A DNA stretch of 64,000 nt from Pavona decussata. Lineage: Eukaryota. Shown here one piece after another: positions 48,393 to 51,800 of the stretch (positions within the stretch are counted from its first letter, which is position 1; the number at the start of each line of letters is the position of its first letter). The DNA lies in the NCBI GenBank assembly GCA_977016875.1, contig CDRNST010000022.1:372001-436000 (forward strand), given 5' to 3'. Made by a program: the position numbers and the translations under genes. The notes beneath the pieces were generated by a model. The model saw only the letters and a list, made by a program, of their open reading frames with translations, was not told the DNA's origin and made no database searches.

Positions 48393-48851
48393 CATAGGGG
48401 GCCCACACAATGTGTCTGTGTAGCCGATTGTTATTATATAGTAAATGCACTGGATTTACCGTTTGCTTCACCTATAGCGATATATCGCTAACTATGTATA
48501 TAAATCAATGATAAATAAACGTTGAATTACCTTATCAGTGGTATATAGTCGTCCTTTTACCTCAAAAGCGGTTTTTTGAGCGATTTTGAAGGAGTTTGAG
48601 TTCGCCGTTGACTGTTCCTATATATGGAACAGTCAACGGCGAACTCAAACTCCTTCAAAATCGCTCAAAAAACCGCTTTTGAGGTAAAAGGACGACTATA
48701 TACCACTGATAAGGTAATTCAACGTTTATTTATCATTGATTTATATACATAGTTAGCGATATATCGCTATAGGTGAAGCAAACGGTAAATCCAGTGCATT
48801 TACTATATAATAACAATCGGCTACACAGACACATTGTGTGGGCCCCCTATG
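48393..48851. mobile_element. 459-bp fold-back transposon with CATAG termini and 7-bp TSD (P-element-like MITE)
   Basis: 226-bp arms that appear to be exact reverse complements around a 7-nt loop (48619-48625). TSD GTGTTTG at 48386-48392 and 48852-48858. Inserted in the NACHT coding region. Confidence 0.92.
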
Positions 48852-49633
48852 GTGTTTGTTGCTGTTATATAAACTGTGGCACCGCGGAGAAGCTTTCTGA
48901 TGCTACTTTGTTGTAAAGACAATGGAGAGGCATCCTCGCTTCCACAGTGTTCTTGTAATCTGACTCATCTTCAGTGGCGATGTCTGACTTTGCAGCAAAT
49001 TCGTCAATCCCATCAAAAATCAAAAGAACTTCGGTTGGGTTTCTAATAATGTAGTCCCAGACCTCATCATTCAAATGTTCCACTGTTTCTGAGCGGCCCA
49101 ACAGCTCATGAATGTTCAGGTCTGTTTCCGAGTTTTAAAAGCGCCTGAGTTTCAGAAGGAAGGCTACACCAAAATGCGTTTCTACATTTTGTTCTTCTTT
49201 GAAAACGTCATCAGAAGCCCACATTCGAAGAAGCTTAGTACACAACATTGTCTTGCCAATGCCTGGACGACCGACAACGAGAACATTCTTGTTTCGAGCG
49301 TCAATAATATGTGCTATTGGTACACACTCAGACCGATTGGCATTGGGTTTTGGGTAAACTGTAAGTTGTTCCTATCTCTCTGTAGGAAAGTCATATTTAG
49401 CCCTGCTTTCATGAATCTCCAAATTGACATAAATTCGATCGATATTTAAATCTTTAGGTGTCGGCCCTTCACCTGTATTAGGGCGGAAAGGTTGCTTAAG
49501 ATCTCTAAGTTGCTCTTTGCCTTCCACAGCACCATTTTTTATGTTCTTGAGTAGTACTTGTAGCTGTGATTGTTTGCGCATGCACTGTTCAGATTGCACT
49601 GTATCTGGCTCTTGTTGGAGTCCTCTTATCATC

Positions 49634-49664
49634 CTGGGCTGAGTTGCTCGAAGCTTGGTTAGCG

Positions 49665-49700
<36 letters not shown>

Positions 49701-49765
49701 CGTCATGGTATTTAACCCGGGTTAGCGGTAACCTCGGTAACCATGCTTCGAGCAACTGGGCTCTG
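49634..49765. mobile_element. PIF/Harbinger-like MITE family B inserted in the NLR linker
   Basis: Homologous (inverted) to 6829-6947, with CTG flanks. Confidence 0.8.
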
Positions 49766-51800
49766 GTGTTCTTGGCCTTCAACAGCTTGTGGCTCTTGTT
49801 GAGCCTGACTGAACGGAATTTGTTAGTGCTACAATTTTTCTTGTGGGGAAACAAGGGTCGGTTTTAAATGATGCGAAAAAACTGCGCGTTTCCCATGCCT
49901 ATTTTTTCCATCTCTAGCTCGTTAAAAGATCCAGACAACCTCAAAAAAAAAAAAAAACGAGAAAGCCATTCATTCCATTTACCACAGTCACAGTCTCGGT
50001 CCAGAAGGTTTTCTTAGTTGCTCTCTGATTGTGACATTCGAAAGTAGCAGGTACTGAAAATCTGTGAGCCAGTGTGTGATTTTGGCAGACGGATGAGACG
50101 AATTATTGCCTTCTCTTCGCGCTAGATTACACTTAAAATTTGAGGGAATGTTACTGGGATAAAGAAATTGAGTCTTAAAAACGATAAAAAAGGATCCCTA
50201 GAAAAAATCTGGTGGCAAGTTGACAACAGTACGCGATAAACAGCCGTCTTCGAGTTCGGTTTCCTTGTTGAAGTTGTCCTTCGGCATCTTCGAGTGCATG
50301 AACTGTTGACTGGATGCAGTGGGAGTAAATCACAGACACAATCGCAACCACAGAGAAGTTAGCAATAACGAAGCCATAAACTGGAATACCGAATTTGTTG
50401 CATTGCTTCTCGTATTTATCGAAACACTTTCCTCGGACGAAGTCCTTGCCGCTAAGTTTCGCATCACAGCGGAAATCAAACTTCAACTTGCTGTTTTCCA
50501 TGTCTGCAAAGATTCCAAACAGAGTCACTCCGAATAGAATCCAAAAAAAAAACTGCTACAAAAGTTTGTTTGTTGAAGATTATATGAGACAACAATTCTT
50601 TAAGAGATTCCATTTTTTTGTTTGGCCGTTTTCGCTTGTTTTATGTTGACACAAAATCGCGGGAGATTGACATCAACTCAGTCTTAAGACATTTGCATAA
50701 AGGAAAGAAACATTTTTAAGAGGGAAAAAGCTTTCAGTTTGCCGCTATGAATATTTACTTTTCACTCGCGCTCGATCCTTGAAAGCCATGGATGGTGACT
50801 GTTAAGTGTTTGCTTGCTGAATGAACTGTGCTATTTCCTCGTCTGGTTGTGTCCTAGAGTGAGATAACGTCGTCTATATAGCGTTGGTTTTGACGCGCTT
50901 CGGTTTAGAATTTCAGTTTCAATTTTTGCCTTTTGTACCCATGGCAGTACCATGAATCTGCAGACAGTCTTTCCCTTTGTCTGCTGCCTCTCTCAGTTTC
51001 TCCCTCGGGAAGTTGGCTCGCTCGAGCTTGCTTTGCTCGTTCACCCGTTTAGCTTGAACTCTCGACCATCACTGCCTTTTTTTTCAAGGCACCAAATTTT
51101 TGTAGAACGCTTTGCGCGTGGCTCAAGACATTGTATATATACTATGACTTTCTCCTTGTTAGCTATTCGAACCCTGGTCCCTTGCGTTCAAGGCAGGTGT
51201 GATAACCACCACACTACAGGCGAACCTACAGTGACATAGTACGTTATATCTTGCTTTTACACAATAACTTACTTTATTCCTTTGATATAACAGCTCATTA
51301 CAGTGATCCTATGTGAAAATATGGCTGATTCAATTAGTATGAATATTTCCTGCTGTCTTTGTTTCTCTTCGTTAGCTATCTCCACCCTCTAATCCCGTGG
51401 CTGGTGGATCCATGGGTGGGGAGGGAGTGACACGTAACTATAATAATTCCCCACTCCAGGAACTGTGAGAAGACAAGTAAAGGATTGCGTATTTACCCCT
51501 CCGAAAACTAAAAGAATTAGTTTTTCAGTGTTGCAAAAGTTTCAAACGCGTCTTGCTAGTGATTTATGCCGACGCTGCTACTTCATCGTTTTTCATTCGT
51601 TTTTGCTGTTTTATCGGAGATTAACTTTTTGCAGCCCCTGAAGAAGGTTAATTTTGTCTTACCGAAATATTGTGCAATAAAATTACCCTTTTTAGCTGTC
51701 CGATCAGCCTTGCATTTGGTTTTACGTTTTATGTTTGAAAATCACTGTTTCCAAAGGCTTTTCAACCGTTTTCAATCTCGTCCGTGTGAACGAAAGCCTA

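Follow-up and report, generated by a model that had tools for sequence, protein, structure and literature searches.

A decayed gene copy, very probably of a NOD-like receptor with an N-terminal connexin-like domain, in a coral genome

Organization of the locus

The window, that is, the whole stretch of 64,000 nucleotides that was analysed, carries on its minus strand the remains of a gene, in which a connexin-like (CxL) domain with four transmembrane segments (TM1 to TM4) and two extracellular loops (EL1 and EL2) is followed by a linker, a NACHT domain, helical domains and leucine-rich repeats (LRRs) (Table 1). The CxL domain is read from 50613 to about 49862, and its reading is continuous only across frame changes. 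The original prediction, made from the letters of the DNA, had placed a connexin-like domain at 49860-50613 as the N-terminus of a NOD-like receptor (NLR), and all of its peptides were recovered on the minus strand with the same order and coordinates. These peptides are spread over three frames, so that the frameshift correction on which the prediction depended was indeed needed. Moreover, a NACHT domain and LRRs were found downstream on the same strand, down to about 46706, in agreement with the proposed place of the domain at the N-terminus of an NLR.

When the product of an intact paralogue (L021, 1358 aa) was compared with the window by tblastn, the HSPs were collinear, contained stops and were distributed over three frames between 50613 and 46706. 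Reading the CxL remnant in the frame of this paralogue, 166 out of 255 codons were identical to L021, and the family profile A1 matched the remnant with an E-value of 3.4e-67, the match containing 8 stops. The reading that begins at the start ATG with MESLKELL stays open for 22 codons. Further downstream, the Pfam NACHT model matched the piece of the window at 48865-49101 (E 2.8e-6), and the LRR region showed an open frame from 47293 to about 46860, with a spacing of 87 bp between LRR units.

Two transposable elements are inserted in the gene. The first is a MITE-like element of 134 bp, for which more than 1000 candidate places were found in the genome, about 50 of them being scored and showing 87-91% identity; the depth of contigs over this element was very high. 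This element also forms tandem arrays on two other contigs (C2 and C233) and was found in RNA-type runs with the same species label. The second is a foldback element of 459 bp, whose copies are dispersed over many contigs with 88-98% identity, and a lone foldback arm was detected at many places of the genome with 95-99% identity. That its two arms are perfectly complementary suggests either that the insertion is very recent or that the arms have been homogenised with each other.

Elsewhere in the window, three long open frames of 393, 670 and 313 aa, overlapping or adjoining each other, were found on the plus strand. The 670-aa frame matched RVT_1 (E 3e-12) and the 313-aa frame matched Phage_integrase, a tyrosine recombinase (E 1.5e-6); judged by these predicted domains, the pair is that of a DIRS-like retrotransposon. 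On the minus strand, two exon-like frames match thrombospondin type 3 (four repeats, E 4e-36) and, weakly, Sushi (E 9e-4); they probably belong to an extracellular matrix gene that has no relation to the NLR.

Table 1. Coordinates of the features in the window and, in the last rows, of related loci on other contigs
Feature	Position	Strand	Remarks
Whole pseudogene (CxL domain, linker, NACHT, helical domains, LRRs)	46706..50613	-	Broken throughout; collinear with L021 in tblastn
Connexin-like four-TM remnant	49862..50613	-	N-terminal helix, TM1, EL1, TM2, loop, TM3, EL2, TM4
Start ATG	50611-50613	-	
Peptide MESLKELL	50590-50613	-	
+1 T, first frameshift	50552	-	Inside TM1, in T10 run (50543-50552); alignment to paralogues
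Longest unbroken piece, 117 aa	50175..50528	-	End of TM1, EL1 with both Cys, TM2, cytoplasmic loop, TM3
Peptide FDFRC	50466-50480	-	
Peptide GKCFDKYEKQ	50403-50432	-	
15-bp deletion, in frame	after 50290	-	Alignment to paralogues
Extra C, second frameshift	50193	-	Inside TM3; X1 and X2 contigs span it without gaps
Peptide NFKC	50129-50140	-	
3-bp insertion, in frame	50117-50119	-	Alignment to paralogues
20-bp insertion, frameshift	50053..50072	-	EL2; alignment to paralogues, contigs
Peptide FECHNQRATKKTFW	50001-50042	-	
7-bp insertion, frameshift	49965..49971	-	TM4; adjoins T15 run of the coding strand
Peptide EVVWIF	49925-49942	-	
TAA nonsense codon	49922..49924	-	End of TM4; Ser codon in paralogues
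+1 base, frameshift	49901	-	Alignment to paralogues
-1 base, frameshift	after 49876	-	Alignment to paralogues
MITE-like insertion, 134 bp	49633..49766		Linker between CxL domain and NACHT; 32-nt terminal inverted repeats
Linker and first part of NACHT	48898..49623	-	In-frame stops at 49372-49374 and 49135-49137
Walker A (GRPGIGKT)	49249-49272	-	
Walker B (LLIFDGIDE)	49000-49026	-	
Foldback element, 459 bp	48393..48851		Inserted in NACHT; two 226-nt arms, 100% complementary, 7-nt spacer
Rest of NACHT and helical domains, then LRR repeats	46706..48378	-	More frame changes and stops
LRRs	46706-47293	-	
Three open frames, 393, 670 and 313 aa	24658-28545	+	RVT_1 and Phage_integrase
Exon-like frames	35416-36012; 37361-37828	-	Thrombospondin type 3 repeats, weak Sushi
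Three-Cys copies on contig C219	L017:1150-1926; L018:1147-1923; L019:1150-1923; L020:1147-1797	-	
Tandem array of CxL-NLR genes	C206:496000-554000	-	Seven genes
Copy passing the Pfam Connexin cut-off	C206:496746-497159		In the tandem array
Match to the Pfam Innexin model	C134:466035-466505	+	33.9 bits

Decay of the copy in the window

The lesions of the gene were called by aligning the DNA of this stretch of the window to two intact paralogues. In the CxL part, six frame-shifting indels and one TAA codon were identified. The NACHT region contains stops beyond the two given in Table 1, and to these the two transposon insertions are added. The copy in the window is a pseudogene without function, its in-frame translation ending after residue 22. 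The reading of the domain as the effector channel of an NLR, as originally proposed, consequently fails for this particular copy, which is dead through indels, stops and transposons.

The lesions were also followed in Logan contigs. These come from two samples, X1 and X2, that belong to the same study; they run gap-free over most of the CxL stretch and reproduce most of the lesions. The samples may be those used for the assembly. The gap-free cover extends over 49739-50317 in X1, and over 49739-49935 and 49969-50660 in X2. In particular, the X1 contig showed zero differences over its 49739-50317 stretch, so that the 7-bp insertion is reproduced, and the X2 contig spans position 50552 without a gap. 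As contigs built from reads carry the indels, these are not assembly slips.

That the copy works as a gene, its frameshifts being homopolymer assembly errors or somehow bypassed, is therefore very improbable. Two of the breaks do lie at long homopolymers, namely the T10 run and, near 49945-49960, a run of 15 bases. A second X1 contig, which is a variant of the 5′ end, also presents a shorter T run (T9, one base fewer at 50543). However, that same contig has an extra T behind 50564 that compensates for the missing base, leaving the frame closed. Moreover, the remaining breaks (the 20-bp and 7-bp insertions, the extra C and the TAA codon) are off homopolymers, more stops follow in the NACHT region and the coding sequence is interrupted by two transposons, all this with the gap-free agreement of read-built contigs from two samples. 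RNA-type runs with the same species label covered the gene only at the MITE, apart from a trace depth at 50192-50265, which speaks neither for transcription of the pseudogene nor against it.

Intact paralogues and size of the family

The longest unbroken piece of the window's CxL domain (117 aa) was searched against the 602-Mb genome, and 20 other loci were found, with E-values from 1e-52 to 4e-6. With the family profile, a total of 21 loci appeared in the whole genome, mostly clustered on four contigs (C206, C331, C42 and C219), and about 15 of them lie within open frames of 1000-1400 aa that join the CxL domain to NACHT and LRRs. Each of the four paralogues that were fetched consists of one open frame (1358, 1342, 1292 and 1047 aa), in which the CxL domain is followed by NACHT with E-values of about 1e-29 (3e-29 in one of them), and strong LRR_6 matches were present in three of the four (1.5e-45 in one case). 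Thus, the features by which an NLR is recognized, namely NACHT followed by C-terminal LRRs in the same polypeptide, were found in the paralogues, and intact genes joining the connexin-like domain to a NACHT in one open frame, which the original prediction had proposed to look for, turned up many times.

Against 1.84 billion proteins, the family profile matched 362 clusters at 50% identity, the best 150 of which all had E-values <1e-27, and the closest named relatives in the database belong to the stony corals Desmophyllum pertusum and Oculina patagonica, which places the genome among anthozoans and not among chordates. Given these clusters, together with the 20 loci found with the 117-aa piece, the similarity is not due to chance. 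In addition, seven CxL-NLR genes were observed in tandem, each of them on the minus strand, within about 57 kb of contig C206; in one copy of this array the CxL domain contains a TAG, and the sole copy that passes the Pfam Connexin cut-off also belongs to it.

Sequence similarity to connexins

In a domain-by-domain Pfam scan, the Connexin model (PF00029) was matched by 34 out of 35 family domains at E≤0.01 (best 4.2e-9), and no family other than Connexin recurred in more than three of the 35. Conversely, with the Innexin model no match was obtained, either among the 35 domains at E≤0.01 or, at E≤1, among the four full-length paralogues; among the family sequences searched, no profile matches were found for Innexin, Pannexin_like, LRRC8, CALHM or claudin. 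The comparison of Connexin with the other tetraspan families, which had been suggested as a check, hence gave similarity to connexins and to no other of them. The scores themselves are low, as most copies in this genome fall below the Pfam Connexin gathering cut-off: the closest intact paralogue reached 30.1 bits against a cut-off of 31.3, and the model was found in three of the four full-length paralogues under the cut-off. When the model was run over the whole genome, the best match was a family member, with 45.3 bits and above the 31.3 cut-off. The sole match of the Innexin model in the genome, with a score over its cut-off, lies on contig C134 (Table 1), as compared with 21 connexin-like loci, a ratio equal to that given for corals in a recent preprint (bioRxiv 10.64898/2026.06.13.731801). 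Regarding the 117-aa piece of the window, its search alone against Pfam gave no Connexin match but only a chance-level DUF6251, because the signal needs the half formed by TM3, EL2 and TM4, which is frameshifted in the window.

A profile built from the 35 domains was then compared with all PDB sequences, yielding 31 matches at E<1, of which 29 were connexins. Cx31.3 ranked first (E 9.7e-6), followed by Cx26, Cx32, Cx36 and Cx43, and the non-connexin matches (2 out of 31) corresponded to the TRH receptor (E 0.028). In the alignments, the residues of the loops were in register with those of Cx26 and Cx31.3, with F-x-C and C-F/Y-D/E in EL1, and the motif C-x3-R-x-T/S-x-K-T from EL2 to TM4 also aligned with connexins.

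It might be argued that hydrophobic helices produce such a similarity by their composition alone and that the domain is an unrelated membrane anchor, given that the E-values against single connexins are modest (from 1e-5 to 1e-3) and that the TRH receptor appears among the matches. This explanation is hardly credible, as the best-conserved aligned positions are those of the loop motifs and not of the helices, almost all members point to one and the same family, and the fold search described below agrees independently. Homology of the CxL domain to connexins is thus supported at the level of sequence profiles.

Predicted structure

The AlphaFold2 model of the CxL domain of L021 (L021:1726-2490) had a pLDDT of 75.9 and a pTM of 0.67. 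It presents a short N-terminal helix (residues 2-7), four long helices (15-40, 78-114, 128-155 and 194-229) and an extracellular beta-sheet (strands 47-49, 163-169 and 185-192). In the Foldseek search against the PDB, the best 50 matches were all connexins, with E-values from 3.8e-6 and target TM-scores of 0.61-0.71, so that the structural comparison envisaged in the original prediction pointed to the family that it had named.

By contrast with this ranking, an exhaustive structural alignment gave tied scores for LRRC8A (Z 14.5), connexins (Z 12.5-14.4) and pannexins 1 and 2 (Z 12-14), with innexin-6 at Z 10.8. The predicted fold is that of a large-pore tetraspan channel and alone does not separate connexins from LRRC8 or pannexins; since the exhaustive search ties these families, the family assignment rests on the sequence profiles. 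An origin of the domain in a different family of large-pore tetraspan channels, be it innexin/pannexin, LRRC8 or CALHM, or its independent invention, with a convergent likeness to connexins, would be in line with these Z-scores and with the presence of two Cys per loop, which is the innexin/pannexin pattern. Nevertheless, such an origin is very improbable, as the profiles matched connexins and never Innexin, Pannexin_like or CALHM, and the identity in the structural alignments was 15-20% to connexins versus 9-13% to the other families. Moreover, the motifs of the loops match Cx26 and Cx31.3 position by position, and the one Innexin-model match of the genome is a separate locus. In the same direction, a HHpred probability of 99.95% to Cx31.3 (6L3U), with innexin links that were not significant, has been reported in a recent preprint (bioRxiv 10.64898/2026.06.13.731801), of which the available part of the text is considered here and below. 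The domain is accordingly regarded as homologous to connexins.

Cysteines and extracellular loops

Four invariant or near-invariant Cys were found in the family, at positions 49, 63, 166 and 190 of the closest intact paralogue. Their counterparts in each connexin triad are the first and the third Cys (C53, C64, C169 and C180 of Cx26), the correspondence of the first EL2 Cys (C169) being taken from the alignment with Cx31.3. In Cx26, the disulfides are C53-C180 and C64-C169, and the middle Cys of the two loops pair with each other (C60-C174). Judged by the alignments, exactly one predicted disulfide has been lost from the family or was never present in it. Two Cys in each loop were counted in 150 out of 161 domains examined, and the absence of the middle Cys from each triad, as first read from the window, is therefore correct for this clade. 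The canonical connexin pattern, C-x6-C-x3-C in EL1 and C-x4-C-x5-C in EL2, was not found; as the three-Cys signature of each loop is lacking, the domain is named connexin-like, in the sense of homologous, rather than canonical connexin. It should be considered that vertebrate connexins of the epsilon clade also have two Cys per loop (bioRxiv 10.64898/2026.06.13.731801), so that the three-Cys signature is typical of connexins and not universal.

The number of residues between the two Cys ranged from 12 to 17 in EL1 (8 in one three-Cys copy) and from 19 to 32 in EL2, and at least one N-x-S/T sequon was present in the EL2 of 33 out of 35 members. Such long loops bearing glycosylation sequons would fit a non-docking channel, by analogy with the glycosylation argument made for pannexins and chordate innexins (PMC8769644).

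A divergent CxL-NLR clade with three Cys per loop was also observed, comprising four tandem copies on contig C219 (Table 1) and a database protein (P0096). Three Cys in each loop were found in only 4 of the 161 domains examined. In this clade, EL1 reads C-x4-C-x3-C, near the connexin C-x6-C-x3-C, and EL2 reads C-x2-C with the third Cys about 30 residues further. A profile made only from this clade retrieved nothing from the PDB at E≤10, so that the clade is not demonstrably closer to connexins. It is rather unlikely, though worth stating, that the triad is ancestral instead of a secondary gain. If it were, the full disulfide signature of connexins would be older than chordates, most anthozoan CxLs would have come to their two Cys by loss, and the picture of the ancestral connexin would become sharper than the statement given in the preprint (bioRxiv 10.64898/2026.06.13.731801), whose available text makes no mention of a three-Cys clade.

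Interpretation and relation to published work

Overall, the stretch is best explained as the 5′ end of a single-exon gene, now decayed, that encoded a membrane-anchored NLR of the anthozoan CxL-NLR family, to which a probability of about 0.9 is assigned. In the intact paralogues, the first ~250 residues would form a connexin-fold four-helix domain with a short N-terminal helix, whose two extracellular loops are held together by two predicted inter-loop disulfides. Both termini would be cytoplasmic, and hence the NACHT ATPase and the LRR sensor would hang in the cytosol beneath the CxL domain. By homology, and following the preprint, intact members may lie in the plasma membrane as large hexameric or heptameric pores, in the form of undocked hemichannels, which would release small molecules such as ATP or glutamate instead of making gap junctions. 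The putative role of the NACHT-LRR part would be to control how the pore is assembled or gated, through the sensing of a ligand by the LRRs and the oligomerisation of NACHT. We infer such a hemichannel function for intact members of this clade from homology and from work published on other species.

The broader idea at stake is that connexins predate chordates and that, at their origin or early in their history, they supplied innate immune receptors with a membrane pore. The view of the textbooks, still held in a 2022 survey in eLife in which no connexin-like proteins were found in any non-chordate searched (PMC8769644), is overturned by this idea. That connexins are chordate-specific, which the original prediction had taken as established, is a view already overturned by Butler et al. 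(bioRxiv 10.64898/2026.06.13.731801, June 2026), and the CxL-NLR fusion family is already known from that work, with electrophysiology and release assays. What is added here is an independent confirmation by sequence and fold in one more coral genome, together with a genome-wide count of the loci (21, of which most stand in tandem clusters). Moreover, birth-and-death turnover is documented by a copy that indels, stops and two transposons have put out of action, and near-universal EL2 N-glycosylation sequons are described, as well as one subclade with a third Cys pair.

Comparison with known systems

The closest known system is that of the CxL domains described by Butler et al. at the N-termini of anthozoan NLRs. 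According to the available text of this preprint, CxL-NLRs occur in 4-100 copies per coral genome, alongside 0-1 innexins; their genes are typically single-exon, with two Cys per loop, and a five-family analysis groups CxL with connexins. The members localise to the membrane, and in HeLa cells they were voltage-gated, some of them CO2-gated, and released ATP and glutamate, the channel function being kept with NACHT attached. Dye coupling was reported as absent for three cnidarian members, members of the family were shown to be hemichannels and not gap junctions, and hexamers or heptamers were the most plausible assemblies with AlphaFold3. The published function comes from a single preprint with peer review pending and from species other than this one. 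The non-docking hemichannel proposed in the original prediction agrees with those experiments on other anthozoan members. The family analysed here shares with the published one the CxL-NACHT-LRR order, the single exon, the two Cys per loop and the multi-copy state (21 loci, with one innexin locus), the difference being that the copy in the window is a pseudogene.

With chordate connexins (PF00029; Cx31.3/GJC3, 6L3T; Cx26/GJB2, 2ZW3), the family shares the four TM segments, the N-terminal helix, the beta-sheet of the loops, the positions of the outer two inter-loop disulfides, the motif from EL2 to TM4 and the single-exon coding sequence. In contrast, it is without the middle Cys pair (C60-C174 of Cx26), and it has longer loops, sequons in EL2 and a C-terminal NACHT-LRR module of ~1100 aa. 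Furthermore, most of its members remain under the Pfam cut-off, and the cnidarian members that were tested showed no gap-junction coupling, according to the available text of the preprint.

Innexins and pannexins (PF00876) and LRRC8 present the same large-pore four-helix topology, two Cys per loop and comparable Z-scores, and pannexins are likewise release channels that carry glycosylation and do not dock, the argument from glycosylation being that of PMC8769644. However, they have no similarity to the family in sequence profiles, and the innexin-like gene of this genome is a separate locus.

Finally, in the resistosomes of plant CC-NLRs such as ZAR1, the N-terminal part of an NLR makes a membrane pore by means of a helix that is released on activation. 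The likeness to the CxL-NLRs would be a functional analogy, with sensing and permeabilisation combined in one polypeptide, whereas the pore parts are unrelated and the anthozoan family has a predicted four-TM channel fold that is constitutive.
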